Shown here: in pieces, positions 15,393 to 35,192 of the stretch
Numbering within the stretch: the first letter of the stretch is position 1
Layout of the letters: each line of letters begins with the position of its first letter
Sequence record: MW845758.1
DNA length: 64,000 nucleotides
Reading direction: 5' to 3' (one strand)
Made by a program: the position numbers and the translations under genes
The notes under the pieces: model-generated
What the model was told of the DNA's origin: nothing
Databases searched by the model: none
Seen by the model: only the letters and a program-made list of their open reading frames with translations

Positions 15393-15393
15393 G

Positions 15394-16336: not shown

Positions 16337-16339
16337 CTT

Positions 16340-16492
16340 TTACTTCTTTTTTCCACCGCCAAGCAGACCGCCGACTGCGCCGACGACACTGCCTATAGCC
16401 GTACCGATACCGCCTAAGCTGATACCGATATCAACGGTAACTGTTGACCCTGTGGTTGGGGTGGTTGTGCTACCCGTCCCCACAGAGACATT
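16340..16492 (-). other. Startless 50-codon reading frame (Thr-rich linker + Gly-zipper helix + KKK); frameshift extension or frameshifted small gene
   Basis: Manual translation NVSVGTGSTTTPTTGSTVTVDIGISLGGIGTAIGSVVGAVGGLLGGGKKK*, in the +1 frame relative to 16491..17000; not in the supplied ORF track. Confidence 0.5.
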
Positions 16493-18583: not shown

Positions 18584-18586
18584 TTC

Positions 18587-18697
18587 TTAATTCACCTTAC
18601 CGAATAAACGGCTGATAAACAACACCAAAGCCACTGCGCCCAACCCTCTTTGAATTACCGCAGGTGTTTCTTTTACAATCGCTTCGGTCTTTTCCAT
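18587..18697 (-). CDS. 36-aa single-TM peptide downstream of the lysozyme
   Basis: Manual: AAGGAG RBS, MEKTEAIVKETPAVIQRGLGAVALVLFISRLFGKVN*; fills the gap between two genes exactly. Confidence 0.65.
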   Translation of the reverse strand: MEKTEAIVKETPAVIQRGLGAVALVLFISRLFGKVN

Positions 18698-18706
18698 CGG
18701 TACTCC

Positions 18707-19297: not shown

Positions 19298-19370
19298 TTT
19301 ACTTTCCTCTTTCCCGTGTTTATTGCGCAATGCGCTGAAGTCATAACAAACCGCAAATAAAAGAAAGAAG

Positions 19371-19388
19371 GGTGCCCCGAAGGGCACC
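19371..19388 (-). terminator. Intrinsic terminator ending the radical-SAM operon
   Basis: GGTGCCC-CGAA-GGGCACC (UUCG loop on the minus strand) with minus-strand tail CTTCTTTCTTTTATTT. Confidence 0.8.
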
Positions 19389-19392: not shown

Positions 19393-20034
19393 TTATTCTA
19401 CGGTCGGATTAAACTCCGCCGCATCCAACTCTGCGTAGTTGCCCTGTTCCGCAAATGCACGGATACGGACTTTGTACGCAGTCAGCGCAGTATGCAGTTG
19501 GGCATTACGTGCCACGATAACCGAGTACAGGCCAATCGTGTCTTCCGCCGTCCAGTCTTCCAACGCTTGGTTATCAGACGTCAGCCAATACTCAGGCACC
19601 GTCTCCGTCTGGGTGAAACCAGACAGCGTAACCAGTGTATCACCACCGGTTTGGAAATCGTGGTCTTTGTACGTAATGTCTGCAGCGACCGCTGAAGCGT
19701 ACGTGCTGTTCGCCTGTTCCAATTTCTTGGTCAGCAGCGTATAGCAATACGTCTTGGTAGACTGCAGCTCTTTCAGGTAGTCTTTCACCTGAATGCCCAA
19801 CACATCTTTGATAAACGCTTGAGCCTGCTTCAGGGTATAGGCGGCCTCGAACTCGGTTAACCCTTGTTCTTGGAGTTGACGCTTAGCGTCTTTCTCACTT
19901 AACCCTTCCAGCAAGGCGTAATGCAAGCGTTTCGCCAGAGAGACTTCACCGTTCGGATCGAAGAACATTCCGTTGCGGTCAATCTGGCCATCACCATTTT
20001 CAAATCGTGCTTTTATCTCGTCAGCACTAAGCAT
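19393..20034 (-). CDS. DUF4376-like protein (tail-fibre-associated)
   Basis: C-terminal half ITYKDHDFQT...YWLTSDNQ...HTALTAYKVRI resembles DUF4376; overlaps the upstream gene by 22 nt. Confidence 0.6.
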   Translation of the reverse strand: MLSADEIKARFENGDGQIDRNGMFFDPNGEVSLAKRLHYALLEGLSEKDAKRQLQEQGLTEFEAAYTLKQAQAFIKDVLGIQVKDYLKELQSTKTYCYTLLTKKLEQANSTYASAVAADITYKDHDFQTGGDTLVTLSGFTQTETVPEYWLTSDNQALEDWTAEDTIGLYSVIVARNAQLHTALTAYKVRIRAFAEQGNYAELDAAEFNPTVE

Positions 20035-20561
20035 TCTTTCTCTCCTACGAATCCGACTTGAGTCAATGTGTCATAGGACACGATGTCAAAGTCAGCCCGG
20101 AGATCGAATCGATACTGCAAATTCGGCAGTGCCTGATCGTTTTCTTGGAATGCACGCATGAACATCATGTCATCGAAATACTGACACGCATTTTCCGGGT
20201 TACGAATCATCCACACCGGGACATTCGGGAAAGACAACGCTAACGCGACCAGAGACTGACCGCCCGGCTCGAGGTTTGACTCGCGCAGAAGGTTCAGTTT
20301 AGACGCCGGAGCTGCCAGCAGACGTTCTTCAAAGCCTGGGTTGCGCTTCTCGATCTCCGCCAGTGAGTTGTGGCCGTTCTCTACGCAGTTGATTGGTACC
20401 ACTACGTTAATGGCAAAACGGTTCATCAACTTCAACCACTGGTCATTGAAGGCATCACCCGGCACGATAGCATGAATGTTAAACAGCTTATAGTGCTGGA
20501 GAAAGGCTTCAATCTTGCGGTTATCGTACTTCGTAAAATTCTGCAGTAGCAGGCTTTTCAT
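20013..20561 (-). CDS. Hypothetical protein in the radical-SAM operon
   Basis: 182 aa; overlaps both neighbours, implying translational coupling. Confidence 0.7.
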   Translation of the reverse strand: MKSLLLQNFTKYDNRKIEAFLQHYKLFNIHAIVPGDAFNDQWLKLMNRFAINVVVPINCVENGHNSLAEIEKRNPGFEERLLAAPASKLNLLRESNLEPGGQSLVALALSFPNVPVWMIRNPENACQYFDDMMFMRAFQENDQALPNLQYRFDLRADFDIVSYDTLTQVGFVGEKECLVLTR

Positions 20562-21915
20562 TTTTGAATTGTTCCTTGCGGTCAGATTGTTCTACAGCCA
20601 TGGTCATCTCACGAATCGCGGTGACGTGTAAGGGCTGTTCTGCGGCTCTACCGATTTCTGCTTCGGCTTGCATCGCAGCCTTCTGGCGACACTGATAACA
20701 GTTACACACAGATTTGTCGTACTGAGATTCGTACGACCCGAAACGTTGTTTCCACCACTGCGCTACTAAGAGCTTCGCGGTAGTCCAACCACACTGACGA
20801 CGCTCGCCGTGGTATTCTTTACGGGCGTCTTCTTCGCCGTCGCCGTTCTCGTAGGCAGCCGCCACACACGATGCACACAGGTGCTTCGCAGGACAACCGA
20901 TACATTGATCCGGATACGACTTCCACTGCTCCTGCACTTCCGCCAACAGCTTACCGCCGTCGGTGTTTACGATTTGCTGGCCTTCGAGTTTACCGATGGC
21001 TTGGCGCGTCGTTACGGTTGACATGAAGCGGTTACAACCGAAGATGTTACGGTCGAAACCTAAACAGGTCATGTACACCGTAGTACCACAGTGCGGACGC
21101 AGACGTTGTGGGTCATAGCGTACGGAATCATCATGGATGAGTTTCTCACGCCAGTCTGGGTTCCACAGCTGATCCACATTCAGACCGTCTGGTAATACGT
21201 GGCCGATTTCAGAGTTCGGGTCTAAGTGCAGACCTTTCTCAATGAAATACTCCGCCACTTCAATAAACTGGTTCGCAATCGCCAGTGCGCTCTGACGCGG
21301 TAACACGTCTTCGAACACCACGTTGCCGTATAAACGACCGCCCCCGGTCACGTCAATCAGCGATTTCATACCAGCCGCGTACTGCATCAGGGTTTCTTTG
21401 GTGAACGTTGCTTTCACACCCAGTTCACGAATGCCGATATCCTGTAACAGTTTATAGCCGTCGACTGCTGCTTGGTAAGACCCTTGACGGGACGTCGTAA
21501 AGATTCGGTACTTGTCGTGGGTTTCGGGTAACCCATCGATAGATACACCGATAGAGAGCACGTCTTTCCAACGGTTCAGAATCTCCAGCGCCAACGGTTT
21601 GTTAAACAACGTACCGTTAGTTGAGATAGAGAACACGTACGGCAAGCCGTACTGCTTACACAGCATCTCTGCTGTTTCAAACGCCGCCAGTAAGAGCTTA
21701 GGTTGCATGAACGGTTCACCACCGATGATATCGATGATAATCCCTTCAATCCCCTGCGTCTTAGAGAAGAAACGGTGTTTGTCGCGATTAAAGCAGGCGT
21801 GGATAAAATCTACGACATCAGCGACTTTGTTATTACGCGGATACTTACGCTCGTAGCAATACTCACAGTCGAGGTTGCACGATAGGTTGGTGACTATTTG
21901 ATACGTGGCATCCAT
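20521..21915 (-). CDS. Radical SAM/SPASM peptide maturase
   Basis: CNLDCEYC (CxxxCxxC), IIGGEPF, ISTNGTL, VSIDG..HDKYR; SPASM-like Cys set PHCG..TC..GCNRF..CIGCPAKHLCASC..RQCG; extra CNCYQC. Confidence 0.92.
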   Translation of the reverse strand: MDATYQIVTNLSCNLDCEYCYERKYPRNNKVADVVDFIHACFNRDKHRFFSKTQGIEGIIIDIIGGEPFMQPKLLLAAFETAEMLCKQYGLPYVFSISTNGTLFNKPLALEILNRWKDVLSIGVSIDGLPETHDKYRIFTTSRQGSYQAAVDGYKLLQDIGIRELGVKATFTKETLMQYAAGMKSLIDVTGGGRLYGNVVFEDVLPRQSALAIANQFIEVAEYFIEKGLHLDPNSEIGHVLPDGLNVDQLWNPDWREKLIHDDSVRYDPQRLRPHCGTTVYMTCLGFDRNIFGCNRFMSTVTTRQAIGKLEGQQIVNTDGGKLLAEVQEQWKSYPDQCIGCPAKHLCASCVAAAYENGDGEEDARKEYHGERRQCGWTTAKLLVAQWWKQRFGSYESQYDKSVCNCYQCRQKAAMQAEAEIGRAAEQPLHVTAIREMTMAVEQSDRKEQFKNEKPATAEFYEVR

Positions 21916-21917
21916 CC

Positions 21918-22811
21918 CTATCTCCCCTTCTTCTTAATAGGATTTAACCAATTCATGATGTACGTGTACGCGTCTTCACCAATAGCATTGGCGATTTTAT
22001 TGCATCCACGGTCAACCACGATTGGTACGTTTTCGGGAACTTGAACATCCCCGTTCGGTTGGCTCACAACAATTTCACTGCAGGCATTACACACATCTTC
22101 ATCGAAGAACTTCTCGATTTTGATAATGGTGTCAGTCCCGTTCATGACATTCAGTCTGCGCATGTTATCTTGCAGACGCTCAAAGCCGTAGATGAAGTTC
22201 AGTACGTGGTCAGGTGACAGCACTTTCTTCATCTGGTTATCGAACAGGTAATTCATGCCGATAAAGCCGAGGTGGTGAATTGCGTCCTGCATTTTCAACA
22301 TGCCTTCGTGCCAGCGCATGTTCCCGACTTTCTCACGGGTTAACACCGACCACAAAATCACGTTGTCCAGCTGGGCCATCACTTCGAACGCTTCGGTATC
22401 ACCGCTACGTGCAAAGTCCATTAACCCGCGCTCTTCATCGTCGTAACCATCAATCGACACCACCACACGGTGAAATGTTTTCAAGAACTCGACTTGCTCT
22501 AAACGTAACTTTCGCCCGTTCGTGAAAAGGTAATGCGTAGCGGAAGGACGTTCAGCCCGCATCATCTCGACCGACTCGACAAGTTTCTTGTAAGCCAGTA
22601 ACGGCTCACCACCTGTCCAGATGATCTCTTCCACTTCGGGATTCTTTTTCAGTAACTCCATCATTGCCTCTTCATGGGTTTTACGCGACACATCCCCCTT
22701 GACCATGTGCATCTCACCCGCACAAAACGCGCAGTTCAGGTTACACTTCGCCGTCAAAGCCACGTTGATGGTCTTGGCGGGTGAGTAGATGTCTTTAGCT
22801 AGCGTCCGCAT
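21918..22811 (-). CDS. Second radical SAM protein (short, no full SPASM)
   Basis: CNLNCAFC, WTGGEPLL, FTNG, VSIDG; only CNAC plus one more Cys at the C-terminus. Confidence 0.88.
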   Translation of the reverse strand: MRTLAKDIYSPAKTINVALTAKCNLNCAFCAGEMHMVKGDVSRKTHEEAMMELLKKNPEVEEIIWTGGEPLLAYKKLVESVEMMRAERPSATHYLFTNGRKLRLEQVEFLKTFHRVVVSIDGYDDEERGLMDFARSGDTEAFEVMAQLDNVILWSVLTREKVGNMRWHEGMLKMQDAIHHLGFIGMNYLFDNQMKKVLSPDHVLNFIYGFERLQDNMRRLNVMNGTDTIIKIEKFFDEDVCNACSEIVVSQPNGDVQVPENVPIVVDRGCNKIANAIGEDAYTYIMNWLNPIKKKGR

Positions 22812-23721
22812 CCGTCAATCCATAAAGACGACGTTGGAACGAGAACAGAGGGTCTGTGTCACGTACATCTTCACCGGCTTTCAACAAACGCGGTGAGCGA
22901 TACGCATCGTACAATGCGTTAAGAACTTCCTGACGCTCGCCCATGCGGATAAGGTCATCGAGTTCTACCGGGGACTCTACAAACGGGGCCAGCGCATCTT
23001 GTTCATCTTTCGAGAACTCAGAAAGCTGGGATTGCAACAGGAAGCGAATCAGTTTACGATCATCCGCCGTCGAGTTCGGGACTGCACCAAACTCAGTCTG
23101 GCACAAAAACGCCATCCACGGTTTCCGGATACGCTTGGTCTGCTCGAGCGGGTCGGCGATGTACGACCACTCTTGCTTGTGCGCATCCCATGCAAACTTA
23201 TAACTGTACGCGAGTAAGTCTGCCAAGCAGTCGATATTCGCGGTTTCAAGGCCAGAGAAGGGGTGATACATTTCACGGTCTTTCTCCACGCTTCCAGTGC
23301 CAGCACCCACAAGCTTAAACAGGTGTGGCCAGCTACCACAGTAGTCGCTGCTGTAACTACGCACACACACCGGACGCATGCCGAGTTCTTTAAAGGACTC
23401 GAACATCAATTCCAGCGGGGTACTATAATTCAGTACGCTATCTGTGAAAAAATACTTGTCATTGACAAGCTTCCCGGTATAGCCTACACCGCCAGTGGCG
23501 AACTGAATGGATTTCACGTTCAACTTACCGACCGTGGCTGTATCCGTCACAGTGTACGTCTTGTTCGTGAAATCACGGCCACGGAGTTTAGGCCAGTCGA
23601 ACTGATCCATCGCAATCAGTCGGAGTTCGTCATTAACGTGCGCGTTAACAGAATCCGGTGACGAGATATGAATCGGGTAATTCAAACTCGTGCGATAGGC
23701 AAGATGATCGTTACTCTTCAT
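22795..23721 (-). CDS. Hypothetical protein between precursors and radical SAM genes
   Basis: 308 aa; 12 nt from precursor 3 and overlaps the rSAM gene by 17 nt; no motif recognised. Confidence 0.75.
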   Translation of the reverse strand: MKSNDHLAYRTSLNYPIHISSPDSVNAHVNDELRLIAMDQFDWPKLRGRDFTNKTYTVTDTATVGKLNVKSIQFATGGVGYTGKLVNDKYFFTDSVLNYSTPLELMFESFKELGMRPVCVRSYSSDYCGSWPHLFKLVGAGTGSVEKDREMYHPFSGLETANIDCLADLLAYSYKFAWDAHKQEWSYIADPLEQTKRIRKPWMAFLCQTEFGAVPNSTADDRKLIRFLLQSQLSEFSKDEQDALAPFVESPVELDDLIRMGERQEVLNALYDAYRSPRLLKAGEDVRDTDPLFSFQRRLYGLTDADAS

Positions 23722-23733
23722 TAGGTTCCCCTG

Positions 23734-23943
23734 TTAACTTGGGTAGGTGACTTGCTTCGCGCCACCTGAGCTACTCCAGCTACAGGTACCCCCGCAGTTG
23801 TACGCGCCCGCGCGAATGCCACCCAAGTTGTTGGTGTTGTTACACGTCCCGTTGTTGGCGATATAACTGTTCGCCTGAGCCGTGGTAATATATTGTTCAA
23901 TATTCGCGACACGCGTACCGATGTCTTTTAATCCGACAGCCAT
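23734..23943 (-). CDS. Precursor-like peptide 3 (short core)
   Basis: RBS AGGAGGT; leader MAVGLKDIGTRVANIEQ homologous to the other two; core CGGTCSWS. Confidence 0.8.
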   Translation of the reverse strand: MAVGLKDIGTRVANIEQYITTAQANSYIANNGTCNNTNNLGGIRAGAYNCGGTCSWSSSGGAKQVTYPS

Positions 23944-23953
23944 TCGCTACCTC

Positions 23954-24382
23954 CTACGGTCCAGAACAACCTGCCCCGCACGAGCCGGTACAGCCCGAAC
24001 TACAACCGCCAGAGCAGCCGCCAGAACATTTACCAGAACAGCTGCCTGAGCAACCACCAGTACACGTTCCTGAACAACCACCACCGCAGTTACCACCACA
24101 ACTACCCGCACATCCACCGGTACAACTTGAACTACAGTTCCCCGAACACGCAGATGAACAGCCAGATGAGCAGTTACCGGTACAACCACCGGAACAGCCG
24201 TTACCGCACGTCCAGCTACAGCTTCCGTTACAGTGGAGCGCTGCAGGCGTGAACCCGTTTAGTAAGTCGGCATTATTTGTCGTTCGACCCGAGATATAAT
24301 TCTGTACCCCGGCTTGTGTTTTAAGTGCAGTGTTTTCAATATTGACCACACGACTTTGTACTGATTTAAGTGAAATTGCCAT
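23954..24382 (-). CDS. Precursor-like peptide 2: 50-aa leader + 23 perfect Cxxx units
   Basis: RBS AGGAG; core CNGS-CSWT-...-CGAG-CSGP counted manually (92 aa). Confidence 0.9.
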   Translation of the reverse strand: MAISLKSVQSRVVNIENTALKTQAGVQNYISGRTTNNADLLNGFTPAALHCNGSCSWTCGNGCSGGCTGNCSSGCSSACSGNCSSSCTGGCAGSCGGNCGGGCSGTCTGGCSGSCSGKCSGGCSGGCSSGCTGSCGAGCSGP

Positions 24383-24390
24383 GTTCGCTC

Positions 24391-24780
24391 CTAGGGTCCA
24401 CTACAGCCAGCACCGCAGCTGCCCGAACATCCGCCTGAACAACCACCGGAGCACGCACCACCACAAGTACCAGAGCAACCGCCACCACACCCACCTGAGC
24501 AGGATGAAGAACAGCCACCGCCACAACCACCGGAACAGGAACCTGAACAATTTCCCGTACAGACACCACTACAGCTACCAGAACAACTCGAGCAACCATG
24601 ACTACAGCCCGATGAACAGGTCCAACTGCACGAACCATTACAGCGCGCCCATGTATCAGGCTGCCCTGCGAGTAGTATCGCGTTATGAACCTTCGCATTT
24701 GTCTGCGCGTCAACACTCGGGCCGGTAGCCGCTTGGACTCGGTCAATACGTCCACTTAGGTCTTTAAGTGAGATCGCCAT
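24391..24780 (-). CDS. Precursor-like peptide 1: 46-aa leader + 21-Cys Cxxx core
   Basis: RBS AAGGAAAGG; core CNGS-CSWT-...-CGAG-CSGP with one 3-residue unit (CSS). Confidence 0.9.
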   Translation of the reverse strand: MAISLKDLSGRIDRVQAATGPSVDAQTNAKVHNAILLAGQPDTWARCNGSCSWTCSSGCSHGCSSCSGSCSGVCTGNCSGSCSGGCGGGCSSSCSGGCGGGCSGTCGGACSGGCSGGCSGSCGAGCSGP

Positions 24781-24845
24781 TACCTTTCCTTTTTAATAAG
24801 AACCGGGCACTCGCCATATAGACGAGGCCCGTGTGTAATTAAACT

Positions 24846-26045
24846 TTATTTCGTACCGGCATCCGCCTGTACGTCGTCGCGAGTTGTGAGGTTCGCGTTG
24901 ACGTGGACGTTGGCTTGCACCACACCGCCGTACTGCTTGTGCAGGTATTGCGTGTGTGGGTCAGCAGCAGACAGGTGGTTAGACAGCGTCTGGTTAACCG
25001 CAGTGATGTTACCTTCGTTCGTGGTGACACGACGGGCGAGTGCAGTGAGGTCCGTACGCAGCTGGTCGATTTGCTGCTGGGTATCACCTTGTCCGGATTT
25101 CAAGTCATCAATCTGATCTTGCAGACTGTCGCAAGTTTGCTCAAGGCCACTTACCTTGTTCTGCAGAATCAATACCAATGAATTGAGGTTTGCTACAATC
25201 AGCGTCATCTTCTGGTAGTTTTGGTCTACCGTATTCAGCTGGTCATTAAACGCGGCCAGTGAACTGACGATGGCATCGATACGGCCACCCAACGCGGTGT
25301 CTGCAGCTTGCAGGTTACCGATTTGAAGAACGGTCGCATCAATCGCTGCTTGTACCCCAGCAATCAGGGCACGGATTTCAGTGGCGGTTAAACCGTCAAT
25401 CTGATGGATATCGAGATTGTGGACATTGCCCGTTGCGTTGATGTGGGCATTCAGCGCATCTAAGAAGTTATTTTTGATGCTTTCGATGATATCCTTGATT
25501 TTCTCAAGCTGTACAGAGTCGCCTGAGCCAATCGCATCGAGAATGCCCGAGAGCATGGTGATAACGTATTCAAAACCGAAGATATCACCGATGTCTTTAA
25601 ACGCTGGCGCGCCGGGTAAGGTATCCGGGAAATCAATGAGGTCTGGGAAGCTGACCTTTTTGTTATCGATATCCAGAATGGCAATGGCCTGCTCAATCGC
25701 CAAGATGTTCGCCGACATCGGGCCACCGACGACTTGGGCCGATACCGTGATATCCGTTGGAATCTTGCTATTGGTAACCACTACCGCCATCACAATCTCT
25801 TGGTTACCGGAGAGTTTCTGGTAAGCCGGATGGGCAAAGATTAACTCGTAGTCGGTACCGCGGACATACGGAGTGGTGGGCGAGTTCGTCGCACGCAGTC
25901 TAAAACTATCTGCGTAAAACGGACCTGCCGGAAAAGCAAAAGACCGGTTGACTTTACCGGAACCCAAAACCACGGGGATGGTGACCGCGTTCGAAGTCAG
26001 CGTTCCTTTTAAGTCAAGCGGGTATTGGTAAATAATGTCACTCAT
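24846..26045 (-). CDS. Short tail-fibre-like virion protein with coiled coil
   Basis: N-module PAGPFY..GTDYEL shared with the three large fibres; long heptad region; HLSAADPHTQY motif typical of fibre proteins; start taken at MSDII. Confidence 0.75.
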   Translation of the reverse strand: MSDIIYQYPLDLKGTLTSNAVTIPVVLGSGKVNRSFAFPAGPFYADSFRLRATNSPTTPYVRGTDYELIFAHPAYQKLSGNQEIVMAVVVTNSKIPTDITVSAQVVGGPMSANILAIEQAIAILDIDNKKVSFPDLIDFPDTLPGAPAFKDIGDIFGFEYVITMLSGILDAIGSGDSVQLEKIKDIIESIKNNFLDALNAHINATGNVHNLDIHQIDGLTATEIRALIAGVQAAIDATVLQIGNLQAADTALGGRIDAIVSSLAAFNDQLNTVDQNYQKMTLIVANLNSLVLILQNKVSGLEQTCDSLQDQIDDLKSGQGDTQQQIDQLRTDLTALARRVTTNEGNITAVNQTLSNHLSAADPHTQYLHKQYGGVVQANVHVNANLTTRDDVQADAGTK

Positions 26046-26089
26046 CTCCAAGCTCCCTTACGAGAGGGCTTCCTTGCCCCCACTATTGA

Positions 26090-29000
26090 TTAAGACGTTA
26101 GATTACCCGACGGGATTAACATAAGATTGACCGTTATCTCGCTGAGTGTCACTGCCGCACCATCTGGCCCAAAGAACTTGGAAGCGATAACCACCTCACT
26201 GTTCGACCCGTTTGCCCGGATAAGGAACGGGGGTGTGTACGAAATCTCCGGAGCCACAATCACGACCACCGGTGAGGTGCCCGCAACCGGGGTAAAGATG
26301 TGTGAGATGGTTTCCAACACATCGGTATTACCCAAGTCTGTGCCCATTGGCTGCACCCACGCCACAACGCTTGTGTCTGAACTGCGGGTCAACTCACGTT
26401 CCGTTGTTCCGTTCCAGTCATAAGCGATAAAGGCCACGTAGCATGGCGTCGCCCCCGGTGATTCCGATGTGCGAATCGCCACGGTGTGCTGCCCATTACT
26501 CACCGGGTAGTCGTACGTTGCGACCGTCTTATACCCGTTAGTAATCGACCCCACTTGCACGCCGTCAATGTACACAATAGCCGAGTCATCCACCGCCGCT
26601 TTAATGCGCAGTGTGCCACCCGTGGTTGTGACTTTGAACTTGGTGCCGAATGAGGACGCTGCTGGCATTATCTTGTCACCGAGGTTAATCCAAATCATGC
26701 CCAGTGCATACGCATCCGGGTTCATGGCCTGGGTAACCGGTGTCGCGATAGCAGGATGCCAAAACAACTCAGCCAATGACGAGCCAGAGTACCACGGTTG
26801 GGAAGCCGGCACATAACGACTGATGAGCGGTCGTGTCAGAAGCCGACTGGCAGTTACGGCTAACGACCCTTGCGTCAGGTACGTTTCACCGTCAACACCC
26901 GCGGGCAATGCTTTCACCAGCCCCAGCGGTGATTCTGCCAACTCACGAACCGGGTTCGAGTCGTGACGATACACAATCCCCATGTGTTCTTCTAACTGAC
27001 GCACACCGCCTAAACGCTTCACCGCTTTGATGTCGGTATCGCTGATAGTCGTGTCGTTGGTCGTTGCGTAACCGATATACAGACGGGTGTCTGAGTCCGG
27101 GTAGCGCGTCTGACTCACGAGGTAACGTGCGGAGAGCGTAGAGCCATCTGTGAACGTTTCTGCGTAGAAGTAGAACGTTTGGTTCTGCCATGTGGTAAAG
27201 GACTTGGAGAAGTCGATGCTGTATTGCGGTAACGTGTACTCAGCAGACTTAATAAAGAAACGCTCTGCTTCAGTGATGTACAGAATCGCGCCGGTCTCAA
27301 CCTGTGGCCCTGCCAAGATAACGTTGCGTCCGGCCTGTTGGTCGTAAGCAATCGTGTTCCCCGGATACGCCACCCCACCGATATACACGCCGTTGTAAAC
27401 AAATCCCCCGGCCATGATTTCGTTGGTCTCAGGCATGTGGATAAGATCCAACTCACCCGACCCGATGTAGAAGGAGTTACGGGCAACCTGCCATGCACTC
27501 CAACTGGTGTTACAGCGCAACGTAAACGACACGTTAGCCGCCGTCCCGGTCGTTAACCAACGTGCCAGTACACGCGTACGAATCACCCAACCATCCGCAC
27601 ACTTAATCAGACGCATCTGGCTGACATTGCTGTCTGCCACTTGCAGGTCTGTGGTGTTGATGGTGTACGTGTGTTTGCTCACGATGACCGTTGGTGAAGC
27701 GAAGTTCATCACCAGTGTGTTGGAGTTGAACGTGAACGGGATTTTGAAGAGATACGCGTAGTTGACGTAGACGCCCGATTCATTCTTCGCGATGTACTGC
27801 GCAGACGCAATCAGGACGTTCTGTCCACCGATGTCGAAGAAGTGTAACCAGTACAAGCGTTTCTCTGTTGCCGCAGCACTCCACTCAGGAATGTTGTTTA
27901 TCAGGAAATTCTCGTAGTCCGTCCACTGTTGTGCTGACACCGTAATCCGGTCAGCCGTCAGCGTGGTGGAACCCGCAACGTTCTTGTAGGCTTGTGAACC
28001 GGCAGCCATAAAGGACGTTCCGTTCAGGTAACACTTCGAACCATCCCACACGTACCCTAAACGACACACATTCTCGTAGTCCGTTTGAGAAATCGCCGTT
28101 CGGTCGTTACTTGGCCCCCAGCCACCGTAGTTCGGTACACCGTACGTGGTATCCGGGTTGTACGCACTGCGCAGACACACGGCAGTGCCACGTTGACGGA
28201 ACGCCAGTTGTTTCGACGTACCACCCAAGTGAACCAGACCACGCTCACGGAAACCGTACAGCGTACCGTACGGGCCGAGTACCGGGAGTTGCTGGTAGGA
28301 ATCCGGCAGCACGTTATTCCAACGCAGAGCATCGAACGGGCTACCGTAAACGGTTGACGTCTTACCACGATAAAGAACGTCTTCGGTTTCACTTCCCCCG
28401 CACCAGTAACTGATACCGTTTGCGTTAATGAACGCAGAGATGTAGGACGCCCCGTACGCAACACTTAACCCCGTGGCTTTATACTCGCCCTTTGGAAACT
28501 CAACGCCGTTTACCCCCAACTTCAACGGGAAGTAATCGTCATCCAACGTCACAGTACCTGCATCCAAGTCAATCACGAACGAAACTGTCCATGCTGGGCC
28601 AAGGATACTGGCTGTCGCACCTGTCGGGCGACCACGCGGGTGCAGACGCACACGCACTTGGTCATCTTCTGCCGCAGCCATTACCGTACGCCCCGAGTAA
28701 GAGACAACGGCCGGAGTAGACCACTTGGCCAACGCCTCAGCAGTTGCGTACCAGAGGTTGGTGGTTGCCGGGTCTGTGGAATTCAGACCTTGGGTAACGA
28801 AGCGACCAATATCCCCATCCGCGTATTTCCCGGTGAGTTTGACCACCGCCAGCACCACGTCGGTTTGGGTACCGAAGGATGCCAGTGGGGTTGACCACGC
28901 AACAACGAAGAAGTCATCGTTGTTTAATACCGCCTGTAACAGCAGCACTCTGTCTTGCGTGACCACCACGCGACACTCGTTCGGGTTCACCGCTTTAATG

Positions 29001-31051
29001 GCGACACTGGACGTTGGTGTGGCTTGTGTGATACGGGCGACGCGGGTGTGCTTCGCCATGTTGATGGTGCCATCGAACAGCACGAGATAGTTATTACCAT
29101 CTGTACCGACGAACACCATCCCATCTTCCCCAACCGCGATAATCTTGGTCGGTTGTACACCGGGAGCGATAGCTGCTAGTCCCGTAGGAACATAACGGGC
29201 CGTGGTGGGTGACGGGTTAGCAAGCGTACCGTCTGAGCCGATGCTGGCTGACCAGTACAGGATTTTCTCAGAGCCCGGGTAACCATCTGTTGCGTTACGC
29301 AGGATGAATACCTTGCCGTTCTCTTCCCTGACAACACACGCCGCATCGCTGTTCACCAACTGCGCAAAGCCTGTGTAATTCCCGGCCGTTGGAATGGGCA
29401 GGAAACTCAGGTTACCGTACGACGCACCCAGAACTGCCCACGTTGGAATCAACCCGTTGGCTTTCTCTTCCAAGTCGCTCAACGTGGCTTCAAGCGTGTA
29501 CCCCTGCTTAGACGTCACCACACGGTCTGTGGACTGGTCGATGATATCCCAGAGTAAGACTAACCCTGCCGCTGAAGAACTCGCGTACGGGACGCCTGTG
29601 ACGTCTGCGAGGGTATGCGTGTGAGTGGTCAGCGCTTTGTTCGCCAATGCTGCGGTCAACGCCTTGGTTACGGGTTTATCCGCCGCCGTGGTGTTGTTCA
29701 TCTTGTCCACACCTACATCTGATGCGGTTAAGACCAGCGCTTGGTTGCCATCAAAGCCTTTCCCGTTGACGGTGTAACTGTCATCGATGTAGTTGTCGAG
29801 CAAATCACGCATTGCAGTAATTGCTGCCTGCGAGATAGCATAACCGTCTGTCGCGTTAGTGCGAATAGACGTGACCTTCACCAACCCAATCACTCCGACC
29901 GATGCTTCCGGCAGGTTAGCTTCCAGACGAAACGCCGAGTACGACTTACCGCTACCGTAAACTTTCACGGTGTCGGTTGAGGCCATGTACGCGTTGGCTG
30001 CTTTGAGTTTCACCTCGTGCAGGTAGAGTTCCACCATGTCCGGCGTAATCAGGTACACCCCGTTGAACACCGGTGCCAACGCATCAGGCCCTGAGTGCAC
30101 CATCAGGGTGTTGAGACCCGCAGACATTTCAACAGCCACGCCATTATTGTTACTGGCGGAGTCCGCCGTAAAGGTCATGGCTTTTTTGGTGGAGACGAGG
30201 ACGTTCGACCCTTTGAAAGTGATAACGTGATCAGCATTCGCCGTGGTGTACGTCAGGACGTTGTTGTTCAGTACCCGCAAGCGACCCATCACGTTGTTAA
30301 ACGCGGTGTCGTTACGCATCAACTGGGCAATGTGTTGGGCACCAATGCCACTACTCGTCATTAACGCAACCATGGTCGATAAGGTCATGCCAAACGCCAG
30401 CGTCGAGTCCACGGCTTTATCAGTGACGCCTAACGCCCCAATATCCGCTGCTGTGTACGAGTGACCTTGCGACTTCAGCAGATGGTGTTGATACAACCCA
30501 TCGTCGAACACTTTCTTGCCGGTCTGGTAAATCAGGTCGGTCACATCGCTGTACGCTTCATCCATATCGGCGGCGCGAGCAATGATACCGTTTTTGATGT
30601 CGTTTAAAGCCGCGACGATGTCATCGCGGGCAATCGCCTCATCCATGTCCTGTGGCGGGTCAATCGCCGGAATGGTAGGCGCGTAACGCATCAGTTCAGA
30701 CCAGTCGACGTTGCGCGGATCTTTGATGTCTTCAGATACCAGCCACTTACCGATTTCCGTTTGTGGCACACGGTAATCTCGCCCAACAGCGTAGATGCTG
30801 TATTTACAGGCGTCGTGGTTAAGCAGCATTATCCCGCCGAAGATGGCAGCCTGAAACGCCTCAGCGGCTTCTTTGTAATAGTAGCCGAGGTAATAGTCCA
30901 GACCTTCGATAAGCGGGACGTCATTTAAATCGGTGATAACCAACCCGGTACGGTAGAAAGGGCCTTCTGGCGGAATGACCGTACTGTAACGGTTCGGGTA
31001 CGTGGCTAATTTTAGCGTACCGTCAAACTGGGCCGGGGTTTCCGTCGCCAT
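26090..31051 (-). CDS. Large tail-fibre-like protein (1653 aa)
   Basis: PEGPFY..GLDYYL N-module; NNTTAADKPV..THTH shaft motif; beta-rich body; C-terminal VDDSAIVYIDG beta-sandwich. Confidence 0.8.
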   Translation of the reverse strand: MATETPAQFDGTLKLATYPNRYSTVIPPEGPFYRTGLVITDLNDVPLIEGLDYYLGYYYKEAAEAFQAAIFGGIMLLNHDACKYSIYAVGRDYRVPQTEIGKWLVSEDIKDPRNVDWSELMRYAPTIPAIDPPQDMDEAIARDDIVAALNDIKNGIIARAADMDEAYSDVTDLIYQTGKKVFDDGLYQHHLLKSQGHSYTAADIGALGVTDKAVDSTLAFGMTLSTMVALMTSSGIGAQHIAQLMRNDTAFNNVMGRLRVLNNNVLTYTTANADHVITFKGSNVLVSTKKAMTFTADSASNNNGVAVEMSAGLNTLMVHSGPDALAPVFNGVYLITPDMVELYLHEVKLKAANAYMASTDTVKVYGSGKSYSAFRLEANLPEASVGVIGLVKVTSIRTNATDGYAISQAAITAMRDLLDNYIDDSYTVNGKGFDGNQALVLTASDVGVDKMNNTTAADKPVTKALTAALANKALTTHTHTLADVTGVPYASSSAAGLVLLWDIIDQSTDRVVTSKQGYTLEATLSDLEEKANGLIPTWAVLGASYGNLSFLPIPTAGNYTGFAQLVNSDAACVVREENGKVFILRNATDGYPGSEKILYWSASIGSDGTLANPSPTTARYVPTGLAAIAPGVQPTKIIAVGEDGMVFVGTDGNNYLVLFDGTINMAKHTRVARITQATPTSSVAIKAVNPNECRVVVTQDRVLLLQAVLNNDDFFVVAWSTPLASFGTQTDVVLAVVKLTGKYADGDIGRFVTQGLNSTDPATTNLWYATAEALAKWSTPAVVSYSGRTVMAAAEDDQVRVRLHPRGRPTGATASILGPAWTVSFVIDLDAGTVTLDDDYFPLKLGVNGVEFPKGEYKATGLSVAYGASYISAFINANGISYWCGGSETEDVLYRGKTSTVYGSPFDALRWNNVLPDSYQQLPVLGPYGTLYGFRERGLVHLGGTSKQLAFRQRGTAVCLRSAYNPDTTYGVPNYGGWGPSNDRTAISQTDYENVCRLGYVWDGSKCYLNGTSFMAAGSQAYKNVAGSTTLTADRITVSAQQWTDYENFLINNIPEWSAAATEKRLYWLHFFDIGGQNVLIASAQYIAKNESGVYVNYAYLFKIPFTFNSNTLVMNFASPTVIVSKHTYTINTTDLQVADSNVSQMRLIKCADGWVIRTRVLARWLTTGTAANVSFTLRCNTSWSAWQVARNSFYIGSGELDLIHMPETNEIMAGGFVYNGVYIGGVAYPGNTIAYDQQAGRNVILAGPQVETGAILYITEAERFFIKSAEYTLPQYSIDFSKSFTTWQNQTFYFYAETFTDGSTLSARYLVSQTRYPDSDTRLYIGYATTNDTTISDTDIKAVKRLGGVRQLEEHMGIVYRHDSNPVRELAESPLGLVKALPAGVDGETYLTQGSLAVTASRLLTRPLISRYVPASQPWYSGSSLAELFWHPAIATPVTQAMNPDAYALGMIWINLGDKIMPAASSFGTKFKVTTTGGTLRIKAAVDDSAIVYIDGVQVGSITNGYKTVATYDYPVSNGQHTVAIRTSESPGATPCYVAFIAYDWNGTTERELTRSSDTSVVAWVQPMGTDLGNTDVLETISHIFTPVAGTSPVVVIVAPEISYTPPFLIRANGSNSEVVIASKFFGPDGAAVTLSEITVNLMLIPSGNLTS

Positions 31052-31083
31052 GTGTAAACTCCCACTTCTTAAAGAAAACGGAA

Positions 31084-31129
31084 GCCGTCCCCCGAAAGGG
31101 ACGGCGCTTACGGACGGGTTGTCCGTAAG
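31084..31129 (-). terminator. Tandem hairpins / probable terminator between fibre genes
   Basis: GCCGTCCC/GGGACGGC (31084-31105) and CTTACGGAC/GTCCGTAAG (31107-31129); minus-strand tail TTCCGTTTTCTTT. Confidence 0.6.
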
Positions 31130-31138
31130 GACTTCCCG

Positions 31139-34100
31139 TTAGTTCCAAACTCCCAACGTGCTGCTCACACCGGTTTCTGCTTGCATCGCCGCACTCACCC
31201 AATCCCACATGGTCGTGGTCAGGTTAAACGGGTTAAACTTGCAGAGGTACAACGCGCCACTGGTATCAGACATCACCGTGGTAACGGCTGCTTCCCCAAA
31301 CTCCACCGTCGCCACCTTTGTCCCGTTTTTGTAGAACGAGATAGTTGACTCGAAGAAGAATGGAGCGGGCACTGCACCGTTTGGCATAAAGTCGAAATAC
31401 ACCACGTCGTCTTTATAGCCGACCACCGGGATGGATGTCTGGTTTGAACTGGCAGCGTTATTCGCCAGCACACCAGATAACACCCGCACACCCGACGCGT
31501 AAGCGGTAAACGCGTAGTTCGCGTAGCCTGACCAGTCCACCTTGTCGTAATCAACCGGTGCACTGATGGCAATACCGAACTCTGAAGACTGCTTCGCGCC
31601 CCGGTTAGGGTTTGCTGTGTCTGACCAGAGTTTGGCCCGGGTGAGTTCACTGCCGGCTGTCAGTCCATGTGGCAAGCAATGCGTACGGAAATACAACGGG
31701 CTGTACTTACTCGGGGGCACCAACACCGCGTTGCCGCTTTGTGGAACACCAATGTACTCCGTTGCCCCACGCAAGGCTCCCCAGTTACCGGGTACCCCAC
31801 CGTAAAGGAACTTCTGCTGCAATCCACGTCCAGCACCTTGAGCAGCAAAATCCGCTCCACGAACATAACACTCGAACAGGCTACGGAAATAGCTGTAGTT
31901 GTGATAATCCGCAGAAGGGAAAATTGCCCCCGCGAGGGCGTGGTTAGCCGCGGTGGTTTGTTCCATACGGTTAAAGCCCACGAACCCACCCATGCAGTCA
32001 CGAACATCAAACGGCATTTCGTAGGTGACATTACGAACGGTTGGTGTTAACGCACTGCCTTCGTAACGCACAAACTGCACACGCAACGTCAGGGTCTTTG
32101 GCACGAACCGATAACGAACGATGTATCGCGTCTCCAACAGTCCTGTGTCGTCAGCGCCCCACGTCGATGGGTCGGTGGCTTCAGCACTGCTGATGTCGTA
32201 CGGATGCACCAGAAGCGATGGGAACATGCCTTGCTCAAGCGGGGTAAACGCAGTTGGGTTACTTGCCATGGCTGGCATATACCCGTACTCCGCCACATCC
32301 GTGAAGACGTTAAGGTGGAAGAACTTGTGATGGCCATTCTTTGCTTTTTGTGCAAAGGTCAGCCACAAGTCCGTCCCACCACTGCCTGCGGTTGCGTTCG
32401 GTGGTAAGATTAAGACCAGTGAACCTTCATACGTGAGCAGGTTGTTCTCGTACGGGTTAGCCGGCGTCTTCCACTGTTGCGGAGCATTGTACTGCGTGTC
32501 CAACCAAAGCGAGAGTTGCCCGTTCGGATTTGCGGCAGGAGAAGCGGAGATCATTCCTGATACTCGCCCGATAGCACCACTCGGCGCGCCTGCTGCGATA
32601 TAGTCCGGGGTATCAGACGCGATATTCACACGTTTGAAGTCCTGATTATCCGTGAGGTACCAATCGCTGCTTTCCGGTACGTGAGCAGGTACCAAGTCCT
32701 GATGCGCTGTCAGCTCACCAAACTGACCGAAGTCTGCCATGGTATCAAACGCAACCGTCGTGGTCGCCACACCCGTTGCACCACAATCCACAAAGCCGAT
32801 AAAGCACTGTGTGGTGTTGATGTCATCGGAAGCGATAGGCTCAGCACGCCCAAACATTGAACCGGTGTTCATGTTGAGATACAGGAAGTGACGGTTATTC
32901 AGCGGACTGACAAACTCAGCCAGTTGCACCAACTTCGTATCTGCAGACGAGGCCACGATGGGATAGTTGGTGTCCCAAATCTCAAAGGCCAGTGCAGCCG
33001 GTTTGCTGCTGTCGTTACAGTCCGCACGGAACGCGACACAGTGAGTTGCGAGTGATGGGTCAACATCAAACGTGGCATCCACTGTTGCCGCACCCGATGC
33101 GACTAACGCCCCATCAATGTACAGGCTGATATTCCCGCCTGCCACTGCCATCACCCTGAGACGGCCTGTGGAGCACGAGACGCGCTCTTTAGCCAAAACA
33201 GAGATGACGGATAGGTCACCGACTTGCGAGGCTGTGAGACCGACTGTACGTGCGTATAAAGGCAGTGTGGTTACGCTTGAGGTTAAGGTCAGTTGCGTGT
33301 TGTGCACTACCCCTTTCGCCCAGTTACGCTCTAACACGTTGGTCGGTTGGAACCAGTTGAACATTGGGGTCGTTTCCAAGTTCACGGAACCAGTAACCTT
33401 GCCTTCTTTACGACTCCCGTCTGCCATGAAGAAATACTTCAGGTCTTGTACGGAGACCGACAGTTTCGAACTGGCCACTGTCCACGTCGACGCGCCAATT
33501 ACCGCGTAGTCAGTAACGGCTTTTGGATCGGCGTCTTTGAGTTTATCCGCAATCGCCGCCAGTTGCAGCTGGAGTTGATACAACACGTTAGGTGCTGTAC
33601 CGCGTCCGGTTGCTAATGCCGCTTCTGTTGTGGCAATACGGATAATCCCTTCGTCGTCCGTGGTGGCATTCGGTACATTCAACGACGCCCACGCGTGGGT
33701 GTGCGTTTTAGCCGACTTGCCATCCAACCCGGTCTGTAGCGCTTCTGACAACGGCTTATCGACATCGGCGGTGTTATCCGCCGCGTCCAGCCCCAAATCA
33801 GCCTTGGTCAAAGTACGAGAGCCGTCGTCCATCGCCACCGAGTTCAATCGGGTTGCTTTAGGAACAAAGGCACCGAGCTTCGAGTCGTACGCGGCTACCG
33901 CTGAAGGTTTCACCGCTTGACCCGAGGCAACACCTGACTTCTCTGTCACAAGCGACACCGCACCGTCTGAACTGACGGTTGCGTTCGGCAGGGCTACGTC
34001 AAAAGAGACCGGGTCGGCTTTCGACCCTTTTCCTTTATACGTCAGTTCTACCGACTGTGACTGCACGTAGAGCTTTGAATCGTCAGGGTCAGTACCGCCA

Positions 34101-35182
34101 CTGTCATCACCGGACTCCTGATAATCCATCAGGGTCGTTGTGGTGAGTAACTGTGTCCCGTTCAGCGTAAGCTTATCCATCCCCAGCGCAGAGCCTGAAG
34201 ATTCGATACGCATCACGTTACCACCGGCCACCCATTCAAAGAACGACGTTCCACCTTTATACCCTGCACGCAGGGCAATACCACCCGTGGTCTTTAAATC
34301 AAACCCGGTGTCGGTAAAGAGGATAGAGGACGCCCCGCTTTGGGATTTGAACAGCGGACGGTTGGCCTGTACCAACTGCACAAAGGTACCTTGGATGTCT
34401 TTAAAGGCATAGGTCTCAATGTACTTGTCGATATCGGATTGTTGCAAACCAAGGGCACGCACTTCCGTGGTAAGCTGACGGAACTTCTTACCGTACGCCA
34501 GAAACGTGTCTGCGGCTTTAAGCGAGATCGGATGGGCATCGATTTGGGTCGCTGTTGTGCCGTGGGGGTTTTTGGCGTTGATGTGACTTGGGTAATCAAA
34601 CGCAGTAATCTCGGCCTGCAGACTTTCCACGGTCACCCGCAGTTGTTCAAGCTTGGCTTTGATTTCGTCATTCGCTGAACCCGCATCCAGTTCCACATCG
34701 TGAATGGCGGAAGCGACATACTTTTTATTCAGCAAATCATGCCACGAGGTTGCAGCCGGCATCACCGGGAACAGCGACGGACGGTTATCAACGTTATACC
34801 AGCTCGCACTGGTTGGGTTGTTCAGGTATTTCACCAACTCATCGAAGGTCTCGAGTAAGCCGTCGTAGAACGTCCCGCCTAAGTGGTACCCTGTGATTAT
34901 CAGCGTGCCTTTAATCGCCGGGTTGATAACATTCACCCCGCAGAACACAGGGCTCGCCACAGAGTCGTCCAGCTCTGTCAGCTGATAAGCCAACTCGTAA
35001 TCGACGCCCGGTGTCAGAGGGTTCGTAGCCGACGCTTGTCGAATACTAAACCCCGACTGGAAGAACGGACGGTGCTGGAGTACCAGCACACGATCCGAGG
35101 CGATGTCCGATTCGAGAATACGCTCCTCAGTAAACTGATTGGTTGTGGCTGTGCCTTTCCAATCGTAAGGAATCGCACTCAT
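31139..35182 (-). CDS. Large tail-fibre-like protein (1347 aa)
   Basis: RPFF..GVDYEL N-module; HINAKNPHGTTA; LTKADLGL..DNTADVDKPLS..THTH. Confidence 0.8.
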   Translation of the reverse strand: MSAIPYDWKGTATTNQFTEERILESDIASDRVLVLQHRPFFQSGFSIRQASATNPLTPGVDYELAYQLTELDDSVASPVFCGVNVINPAIKGTLIITGYHLGGTFYDGLLETFDELVKYLNNPTSASWYNVDNRPSLFPVMPAATSWHDLLNKKYVASAIHDVELDAGSANDEIKAKLEQLRVTVESLQAEITAFDYPSHINAKNPHGTTATQIDAHPISLKAADTFLAYGKKFRQLTTEVRALGLQQSDIDKYIETYAFKDIQGTFVQLVQANRPLFKSQSGASSILFTDTGFDLKTTGGIALRAGYKGGTSFFEWVAGGNVMRIESSGSALGMDKLTLNGTQLLTTTTLMDYQESGDDSGGTDPDDSKLYVQSQSVELTYKGKGSKADPVSFDVALPNATVSSDGAVSLVTEKSGVASGQAVKPSAVAAYDSKLGAFVPKATRLNSVAMDDGSRTLTKADLGLDAADNTADVDKPLSEALQTGLDGKSAKTHTHAWASLNVPNATTDDEGIIRIATTEAALATGRGTAPNVLYQLQLQLAAIADKLKDADPKAVTDYAVIGASTWTVASSKLSVSVQDLKYFFMADGSRKEGKVTGSVNLETTPMFNWFQPTNVLERNWAKGVVHNTQLTLTSSVTTLPLYARTVGLTASQVGDLSVISVLAKERVSCSTGRLRVMAVAGGNISLYIDGALVASGAATVDATFDVDPSLATHCVAFRADCNDSSKPAALAFEIWDTNYPIVASSADTKLVQLAEFVSPLNNRHFLYLNMNTGSMFGRAEPIASDDINTTQCFIGFVDCGATGVATTTVAFDTMADFGQFGELTAHQDLVPAHVPESSDWYLTDNQDFKRVNIASDTPDYIAAGAPSGAIGRVSGMISASPAANPNGQLSLWLDTQYNAPQQWKTPANPYENNLLTYEGSLVLILPPNATAGSGGTDLWLTFAQKAKNGHHKFFHLNVFTDVAEYGYMPAMASNPTAFTPLEQGMFPSLLVHPYDISSAEATDPSTWGADDTGLLETRYIVRYRFVPKTLTLRVQFVRYEGSALTPTVRNVTYEMPFDVRDCMGGFVGFNRMEQTTAANHALAGAIFPSADYHNYSYFRSLFECYVRGADFAAQGAGRGLQQKFLYGGVPGNWGALRGATEYIGVPQSGNAVLVPPSKYSPLYFRTHCLPHGLTAGSELTRAKLWSDTANPNRGAKQSSEFGIAISAPVDYDKVDWSGYANYAFTAYASGVRVLSGVLANNAASSNQTSIPVVGYKDDVVYFDFMPNGAVPAPFFFESTISFYKNGTKVATVEFGEAAVTTVMSDTSGALYLCKFNPFNLTTTMWDWVSAAMQAETGVSSTLGVWN

Positions 35183-35192
35183 TTAGTTCTCC

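Follow-up and report, generated by a model that had tools for sequence, protein, structure and literature searches.

Why should a bacteriophage encode, directly beside its tail-fibre genes, two radical S-adenosylmethionine (SAM) enzymes together with proteins built around ladders of regularly spaced cysteines (Cys)? The question is raised by eight genes in the window, by which we mean the whole 64,000-nucleotide (nt) stretch of record MW845758.1 that was analyzed; the record is the 251 kb genome of Erwinia phage pEa_SNUABM_11, a Wellingtonvirus that infects Erwinia amylovora and belongs to the SPN3US-like (phiKZ-related) jumbo bacteriophages, and in this region its DNA is ~82% identical to that of phages Kwan and Wellington. 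We favor a model, which we consider probable, in which the cluster is a tail-fibre maturation module and a fibre component is matured by thioether-type cross-linking. An original prediction, made from the nucleotide letters alone, had proposed that the phage uses the chemistry of ribosomally made peptides that are modified after translation (RiPPs) for a structural polypeptide rather than for a secreted antibiotic. That structural interpretation gains support because homologous Cys domains are fused to fibre-type N-termini, because the module occupies the place of fibre genes and because a Tfa-type gene is present. The evidence speaks for a fibre part, cross-linked by enzymes and so far undescribed, and not for an antibiotic.

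Results

Eight tightly packed genes at the end of the tail-fibre genes

All eight minus-strand open reading frames (ORFs) that had been predicted for 19393-24780 were found. They are packed tightly: taken in gene order, the gaps are 8, 10, 12 and 2 nt, and the remaining junctions overlap by 17, 41 and 22 nt.

24846..38846, minus strand: four upstream tail/fibre genes (401, 1653, 1347 and 1217 residues), counterparts of SPN3US gp167-gp170 by position and gene order
24391..24780, minus strand: pre1, Cys-ladder protein 1, 129 residues (ORF, TIGR04114 and PHROG 6085)
23954..24382, minus strand: pre2, Cys-ladder protein 2, 142 residues (ORF, TIGR04114 and PHROG 6085)
23734..23943, minus strand: pre3, short paralogue, 69 residues (PHROG 6085)
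22795..23721, minus strand: conserved partner protein, 308 residues (PHROG 8030)
21918..22811, minus strand: radical SAM enzyme, 297 residues (Pfam Radical_SAM)
20521..21915, minus strand: radical SAM/SPASM-type enzyme, 464 residues (best families TIGR04115 and PapB)
20013..20561, minus strand: conserved protein without a family, 182 residues (PHROG 7988)
19393..20034, minus strand: predicted Tfa-type tail-fibre assembly chaperone, 213 residues (Pfam DUF4376)
19371..19388, minus strand: terminator-like hairpin of 7 pairs, 6 of them G-C, with a T-rich tail

The hairpin lies right after the last stop codon and closes the gene set, as had been claimed, and the claimed adjacency to tail genes was confirmed as well. 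The 1653-residue upstream protein is 33% identical to SPN3US gp168 over its full length, and the upstream counterparts have been placed in the tail by mass spectrometry: SPN3US virions contain gp167-171, which tailless particles lack (PMC5105663 Table S4), and gp168 has been named a baseplate/fibre protein (PMC5105663).

The Cys ladders are encoded and under strong purifying selection

In pre1, an N-terminal part of ~46 residues is followed from residue 47 by 21 Cys, with 19 spacings of four residues and one of three, and the protein ends in GCSGP. In pre2, the array starts at residue 51, behind the junction motif NNADLLNG...HC-NGSCSWTC, and comprises 23 Cys with a spacing of four in 22 of 22 intervals, so that the predicted counts, 21 Cys in the first precursor and 23 perfect Cxxx units in the second, proved correct. 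The cores of both proteins consist to ~85% of Gly, Ser and Cys with few Thr, Asn and Ala and contain 0-1 Lys/Arg (at most one Lys), while Asp and Glu are absent from the cores of pre1-pre3. The third predicted precursor is a genuine 69-residue gene, conserved in every SPN3US-like locus examined and in the contigs L023 and L024, but it is not a repeat substrate: with three Cys, the junction motif in the form CGGTCSW and no repeat array, it is a paralogue of the N-terminal part. Consistently, pre1 and pre2 pass the TIGR04114 model (25.7 and 28.3 bits; cut-off 20) and pre3 does not match it, whereas all three match PHROG 6085 (E-values 1.6e-28, 1.3e-33 and 6.7e-24, for pre3 over profile positions 1-66), a family that carries no assigned function; in Pfam, PF27846 is, under the name tSAM_targ_Cxxx_rpt, a target-repeat family. 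An AlphaFold2 (AF2) model of pre2, built on a 53-sequence alignment, has a confident N-terminal helix at residues 5-32 and a Cys region with a predicted local distance difference test score (pLDDT) below 50.

Several reading frames stay open across the repeat. The MW845758 annotation shows a wrong frame at 24366-24755 and leaves the pre2 region blank; that of Kwan (L002 16533-17294) places gp183 on the opposite strand and gp184 in a wrong frame; in SPN3US (L003 6094-7123), gp166 is misframed and the other two Cys-domain genes are unannotated; and a metagenome gene caller likewise misframed the Cys-domain ORF of the P2-like contig L022. Because alternative frames are both open and used in public records, the coding frame was tested. 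In comparison with Kwan, differences fall on codon positions 1, 2 and 3 in the numbers 17/11/72 for pre1 and 16/12/75 for pre2, and synonymous exceed non-synonymous codon changes by 58:20 and 68:13, respectively. Across 16 pre1 sequences from all clades, 21 of 21 Cys columns are invariant; where lengths differ, single residues between Cys have been lost and never a Cys. The third-position excess, the synonymous excess and the invariant Cys together identify the Cys frame as the gene: the Cys-rich frame is coding and under strong purifying selection. The alternative frames in GenBank were rejected on the codon-position statistics. Motifs resembling ribosome-binding sites (GGAG/GGAGG) lie 5' of each ATG. 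The DNA repeat itself is degenerate (66-75% matches in TRF), and with a DNA periodicity this weak, a recent origin of the repeat by slippage was rejected.

The original prediction of a Cys at every fourth residue holds strictly in Wellingtonvirus, to which strict period 4 is confined; elsewhere Cxx units are frequent, and family-wide ~84% of spacings are four and ~15% three, the number and order of Cys being what is conserved. In 62-91% of units a Ser or Thr directly follows the Cys, and roughly half have Gly one position further on. Throughout the SPN3US-like loci pre1 keeps 21 Cys, while the number in pre2 ranges from 20 to 23. The pre1 count is exactly 21 in L002-L017 and in L023, including a contig with 45% enzyme identity, despite changes in spacing. 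So constant a number suggests that rings, layers or ligands are present in a set stoichiometry.

The module occupies the fibre slot of several tail architectures

The SPASM enzyme occurs in 66 phage records, nearly all of them from jumbo phages of Erwinia, Salmonella, Cronobacter, Escherichia and Proteus; a scan of 50,697 deposited phage genomes turned up enzymes of this type in the SPN3US-like group and, beyond it, only in 14 contigs of uncultured faecal phages. Every SPN3US-like locus examined holds the same gene set. An exhaustive HMMER search with pre2 returned 506 cluster representatives, one group of which shares the motif N-[A/S]-x-x-L-x-G-x5-[Y/F]-x-C-x(1,2)-G-C-S-W-T-C behind varied N-terminal domains. 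All 23 scanned relatives with this CSW motif match PHROG 6085, and with their N-terminal parts 15 matches to PHROGs of the tail-fibre, collar-fibre or minor-tail type were obtained; this is a count per family, in which a single protein may appear twice. The homologous Cys domains form the C-terminal parts of proteins of 200-475 residues with tail-fibre N-termini. Judged from these comparisons, fibre-type proteins carry the Cys ladder as a C-terminal domain, and this domain is accompanied from phage to phage by radical SAM enzymes of its own.

In the P2-like contig L022, the baseplate genes W-J-I are followed by a 236-residue Cys-domain ORF whose residues 1-70 match tail-fibre PHROGs (E ~1e-6) and whose residues 66-176 match PHROG 6085 (E 6e-12), and then by a radical SAM gene, a 258-residue gene related to that of the 308-residue protein, a radical SAM/SPASM gene and collagen-like fibre proteins. 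In L026 and L027 the set lies within SU10-like podovirus structural modules, in L030 directly 3' of a Phage_T7_tail fibre gene of a T7-like phage, and in L029 directly 3' of a gpJ-like tip protein in a lambda-like prophage of a Synergistaceae metagenome-assembled genome; in L023 it adjoins Peptidase_S74 fibres, and in L028 it is found in a larger phage. In each context, the Cys-ladder gene is followed either by two radical SAM genes, usually separated by a gene of ~250 codons, or by a single gene of ~668 codons in which both are fused, and in seven further contexts the top two families of the SPASM partner are again TIGR04115 and PapB. The synteny with fibre genes that had been suggested as a check is found in the SPN3US-like loci and in P2-, SU10-, T7- and lambda-like modules, with L024 and L025 as apparent exceptions.

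Several further observations were made on these and related sequences. The fused ~668-residue proteins of L027 (10490-12499) and L030 (10330-12336) contain two Radical_SAM domains, and in L027 a RelB/YafQ toxin-antitoxin pair lies directly 3' of the module. Two unrelated viral contigs (L018 7471-7942, L019 4069-4543) carry a radical SAM gene with 27% identity directly behind the genes of two small peptides, whose 17-18 Cys recur at period 3 (CxxC repeats); here viruses pair a Cys repeat with a radical SAM gene in another form. Among the CXXX-repeat proteins, a third large group (P0124-P0130, P0177, P0192, P0204 and others) has the N-terminal signature RR..Y.GS...Y..Y.Y...P and arrays that start with DC...C.GLC, and includes giants of 1500-1800 residues with many arrays. 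A search of bacterial species-representative genomes for a DNA pattern encoding C-x-x-G-C-S-W-T-C-S-x-x-C gave 53 matches, all of which were due to chance (other frames or GC-rich DNA), and is uninformative on the distribution in prophages. With tblastn against cultured phages, a Cys-ladder fibre protein matched only through an N-terminal carbohydrate-binding-like stretch, the repeat presumably being masked by the low-complexity filter.

The two radical SAM enzymes are distinct

The 464-residue enzyme has its CX3CX2C motif at C13/C17/C20 (PF04055, 45.1 bits; cut-off 29.5) and eight auxiliary Cys at positions 276, 284, 294, 338, 341, 347, 350 and 375; in 17 of 17 homologues neither the motif nor these Cys vary, and there is an extra CxCxxC at 404-409. 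The arrangement is that of a SPASM domain, in which a C-terminal set of seven or eight Cys serves two auxiliary [4Fe-4S] clusters. The SPASM-like core reads C338-X2-C341-X5-C347-X2-C350, with X2 as its last spacing where the canonical one is X3. TIGR04115 is the best family (112.8 bits, E 2.5e-32, profile positions 7-341 of 359), followed by PapB (NF047865; 101.3 bits), and both alignments extend through the SPASM regions. Weaker matches are to TIGR03906 (64 bits), TIGR04463 (53 bits) and the anaerobic sulfatase maturase (51 bits), and the closest solved relative is the thioether synthase CteB (5WGG/5WHY; E 6e-8). The genes for pre1-pre3 lie 1.8-2.9 kb upstream of the SPASM gene in the same gene string, an arrangement that is kept in relatives.

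In the 297-residue enzyme the motif is formed by C23/C27/C30 (Pfam Radical_SAM, 56.2 bits; cut-off 29.5). Its C-terminal three-Cys site (C241, C244, C270), conserved in 19-20 of 20 homologues, resembles in its sequence a twitch-type auxiliary cluster site. Its matches in NCBIfam are generic and reach at most 50 bits, among them the epimerase YydG (34 bits) and MoaA. The two enzymes have the cluster motif alone in common, and the possibility that they are recent paralogues was rejected. In the uncultured SPN3US-like contigs L012 (4530-5450) and L017 (4531-5451), pre1 and pre2 are separated by a third radical SAM gene; its product is ~40% identical to the 297-residue enzyme.

Partner proteins

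Both enzymes begin directly with the radical SAM core and show no N-terminal recognition domain, and the 308-residue partner may therefore present the substrate. This protein has no match in Pfam or NCBIfam; its 34 homologues are, every one, on phage contigs. Its AF2 model is of good quality (pLDDT 85.7; predicted template modelling score 0.82), and a fold search with it gave no match in PDB (best E 0.5) and in BFVD only its own orthologue; neither by sequence nor by fold was a PqqD-like match detectable. By hhalign, its C-terminal half is homologous to the middle genes of ~250 codons in the SU10-like (94%) and P2-like (85%) modules, while no homology was found to the middle gene of L028. We regard it as a candidate factor for assembly or for presenting the substrate, and the feature that is recognized may be the invariant junction motif of the Cys proteins.

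The 182-residue protein, with no match in Pfam or NCBIfam, belongs to PHROG 7988 (E 1.7e-75); its gene lies 3' of the SPASM gene in all SPN3US-like loci examined and is weakly recognizable in L023 and L024. The last gene, which had been described as DUF4376-like, indeed encodes a C-terminal DUF4376 domain (residues 103-205) above the Pfam cut-off (28.6 bits; cut-off 25), and is found in no version of the cluster other than the SPN3US-like ones. Fibre chaperones of the Mu U/TfaMu type and Alteromonas phage chaperones have DUF4376 as their conserved C-terminal domain (PMC7882524, PMC10579305), and we predict from this homology that the 213-residue protein is a tail-fibre assembly chaperone of the Tfa class. 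In agreement with the original prediction, searches of Pfam, NCBIfam and PHROGs found no peptidase, exporter (ABC or other) or immunity family among the eight proteins.

Neighbouring features

One further feature lies in the 65-nt gap between the gene for the 401-residue tail protein and pre1.

24804..24831, minus strand: stable hairpin, followed by a U-rich tail GUUCUUAUU

The hairpin has a folding energy of -22.9 kcal/mol (z -3.0), with an equally good fold in 1 of 200 shuffled sequences. It is a possible partial terminator or RNA-stability element and may allow the Cys-ladder genes to be expressed differently from the upstream fibre genes.

Past the closing terminator, the minus strand at 17897-19387 encodes a lysin with GH108 and PG_binding_3 domains (a 226-residue ORF, given a later start in GenBank), a 36-residue ORF and a DUF1353 protein that is labelled tail assembly-like in the Kwan record. 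A GH108/PG_binding_3 lysin likewise lies just 3' of the module in the lambda-like prophage L029. The cluster is also adjoined by ten tandem genes of 295-478 codons on the plus strand (window ~5300-16900; L001 1-10904), which look like an array of paralogues. In Kwan, the tandem run beside the cluster (gp163-171) is annotated as putative virion structural proteins, and SPN3US gp138-155, which are of similar sizes, are virion proteins in a published table.

Discussion

A model for a matured fibre part

Altogether, we propose that the three PHROG 6085 proteins are small fibre-type structural proteins with a short N-terminal helix and a shared junction motif (N-x-x-x-L-x-G ... C-x-G-x-C-S-W-T/S-C), two of which would carry a C-terminal ladder of 21-23 Cys spaced by [S/T]-G-x; in the jumbo phages, the short helical N-terminus would replace the long fibre shaft. 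Both radical SAM enzymes would modify the ladder inside the infected cell, probably assisted in substrate presentation by the 308-residue partner. The likeliest chemistry would convert the thiols into a run of small thioether rings of the sactionine or ranthionine type, with Ser, Thr, Gly or Asn as acceptors, and would leave a stiff, protease-resistant rod or tip on which redox conditions have no influence. The DUF4376 protein would then chaperone its oligomerization or attachment, and the enzymes would remain outside the virion. Within this model, we infer that the Cys proteins are the substrates, and likewise the type of cross-link, the oligomerization, the incorporation into virions and the roles of the 308- and 182-residue proteins.

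The proteomics of SPN3US can be read in the light of this model. In that phage, gp161-166 were undetected in virions (PMC5105663 Table S4). Of these, gp161-165 are the orthologues of the two enzymes, the 308- and 182-residue proteins and the chaperone, and their absence from virions fits assembly factors. For the Cys proteins, the same data are blind because two are unannotated, gp166 is misframed and the cores are without Lys/Arg. Taken together, the Tfa-type gene, the lack of a protease or exporter gene and the absence of the enzymes from virions argue for a structural product that is matured inside the cell and not for a diffusible RiPP.

Relation to known systems

The phage module is a relative of the TIGR04114/TIGR04115 pair, not a usual RiPP natural product system. 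As in that pair, a Cys-Xaa3 repeat protein is encoded beside a radical SAM/SPASM enzyme; in contrast to it, the phage enzymes, with 113-186 bits where the cut-off is 350, form a sister group outside the equivalog, and in the phage sets the PHROG 8030 partner and a second radical SAM enzyme come in addition. The bacterial CXXX targets recovered have a twin-arginine-like RREFFKK leader, whereas the phage proteins have fibre domains or a short helix and the CSWTC junction. A literature search found no published chemistry for TIGR04115. PapB, the maturase of freyrasin and the second-best family (up to 207 bits in the fused phage enzymes), joins Cys to the beta or gamma carbon of Asp/Glu in CX3D/E motifs. 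Its substrate resembles the phage ladder in its repeated Cys at period 4; unlike it, the phage cores are without Asp/Glu, the phage enzymes score under the cut-off and there is no small secreted product. Because the cores lack Asp and Glu, an acceptor of the PapB type is impossible. The Ser or Thr beside each Cys is a candidate acceptor; by analogy with the nearest families, thioether formation from Cys appears to be the likeliest chemistry.

In Methanococcus voltae, the radical SAM/SPASM enzyme CrpC installs ranthionine links on CrpA, a large, repetitive Cys-rich protein (PMC13692751), which offers, as an analogy, a precedent for thioethers on a protein-sized substrate. The CrpA paralogues share an N-terminal part of ~47 residues, as the phage paralogues share their N-terminus. 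CrpC differs in belonging to TIGR04463 (53 bits for the phage enzyme), the CrpA repeat is of 17 residues (C-x-x-Q/D), and the system is cellular, without viral or fibre context. In QhpD/QhpC (TIGR03906), which serves the maturation of quinohemoprotein amine dehydrogenase, a radical SAM/SPASM enzyme likewise forms several intramolecular thioethers in a protein that is retained in a larger assembly instead of being exported as a natural product; unlike the phage ladder, these are three links to Asp/Glu in an enzyme subunit, with no repeat ladder and no virus. The Tfa chaperones (Mu U/TfaMu and gp27 of Alteromonas phage V22) share with the 213-residue protein the C-terminal DUF4376 and a gene position 3' of fibre-type genes, and differ from it in that the N-terminal half of the window protein is unrelated. 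Covalent cross-links that stabilize a virion are also known from the capsid chainmail of HK97, where they are autocatalytic isopeptide bonds; the phage module, in contrast, would use dedicated radical SAM enzymes, and would act on a tail-fibre part instead of a capsid. We know of no virion protein described as being matured by a radical SAM enzyme, and a literature search found none, nor any paper connecting phage fibres with radical SAM genes of the SPN3US type, with CXXX repeats or with thioethers; in the SPN3US papers, gp163/164 appear in a homologue table only.

Weighing the model against its alternatives

A number of points weigh against the proposed maturation of a fibre part. The Pfam SPASM model does not match the 464-residue enzyme, which is recognized by Radical_SAM and Fer4_12 only (E up to 0.1). 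In the search against TIGR04114, TIGR04115 and SPASM models that had been suggested as a check, pre1 and pre2 passed and TIGR04115 came out as the best family; its equivalog cut-off of 350 was missed, so that the enzyme is not a member, and the PapB score is likewise below its cut-off of 340. The Asp/Glu-free cores exclude as such the PapB model, in which Cys is joined to Asp/Glu and which is the only close model defined by biochemistry. AF2 yields no fold for the Cys region, no attachment domain for the baseplate or tail was recognized in the N-terminal ~45 residues of pre1-pre3 by Pfam, PHROGs or AF2, and no fibre gene is visible near the set in L024 and L025. Finally, both the modification of the Cys and the presence of the Cys proteins in virions are points that we infer.

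Among the alternatives, the best placed, which we nevertheless consider unlikely, is that the ladder is a metal- or iron-sulfur-binding fibre domain in which thiolates coordinate metal and the enzymes modify little or act on another protein. Some phage fibre tips hold metal ions between their chains, and the extreme density of Cys together with a count that is exactly conserved although the spacing is three or four would suit such a domain. The authors of the CrpA study suspect metal binding for that Cys-rich radical SAM target (PMC13692751). Against this stand the two radical SAM genes beside the Cys domain in every context examined, the nearest enzyme families, which make thioethers from Cys, and the expectation that free thiolates on an extracellular fibre would oxidize. 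A mixed outcome, with some Cys cross-linked and others binding metal, is compatible with the data.

Slightly less likely again is a fibre role with another chemistry, such as epimerization, formylglycine formation, C-C links or disulfides formed after release. The generic matches of the 297-residue enzyme to families that include YydG and MoaA would allow for this, as would the match of the 464-residue enzyme to the anaerobic sulfatase maturase and the name AslB that one source gives to a distant homologue; however, TIGR04115 and PapB score about twice as high as the sulfatase maturase, consistently in eight contexts, and Cys is the sole invariant feature of the substrate.

We regard as improbable a classical RiPP system in which the precursors would give rise to a diffusible antibiotic, toxin or signal released at lysis. 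The layout of precursor plus maturase and the nearest enzyme families, which are RiPP maturases, are what such a system would have, and Cys-rich proteins are unreported in SPN3US virions, an absence that carries little weight given that the reading frames were outside the search database. No leader protease, exporter or immunity gene was found by Pfam, NCBIfam or PHROGs, the operon ends in a gene of the Tfa chaperone type, several tail architectures have the module in the place of fibre genes, with homologous Cys domains at the ends of fibre-type proteins, and the precursors are not short, with 129-142 residues here and up to 475 in relatives. The weakest alternative, that the Cys-rich ORFs are chance open frames in GC-rich repetitive DNA and no genes at all, would account for the other frames or blanks in the pEa_SNUABM_11, Kwan and SPN3US records and for the multiple frames open over the repeat, and can in practice be dismissed on the codon-position bias, the excess of synonymous changes, the ribosome-binding-site-like motifs, the matches to TIGR04114 and PHROG 6085 and the invariance of Cys between clades with just 45-67% enzyme identity.

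Implications for phage fibres

If the cluster is a fibre maturation module, radical chemistry of the RiPP type builds a part of the virion, which would be an assembly step not described before. The Cys-ladder domain, the two radical SAM enzymes and the PHROG 8030 partner would then make up a mobile cassette of three to four genes that is found across tail architectures and supplies a new fibre end. A bolder version of this idea, namely that the fibres of many unrelated phages, among them jumbo phiKZ-like, P2-like, SU10-like, T7-like and lambda-like ones, end in a Cys ladder of thioether rings made by radical SAM enzymes, as the first virion cross-link of this kind and a new class of fibre tip or receptor-binding structure, is one that we put forward tentatively, as a serious possibility that falls somewhat short of probable. 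Such a class of tips would have been missed by annotation pipelines because the repeat is open in several frames. Already now, the Cys genes are misannotated or missing in pEa_SNUABM_11, Kwan and SPN3US, and proteomic searches based on those annotations are blind to their products. The model would also provide a biological role for the uncharacterized systems of the TIGR04114/TIGR04115 type and, in the SPN3US-like phages, a much-used model of giant phages, a role for five genes that are labelled hypothetical and are conserved in all members examined.

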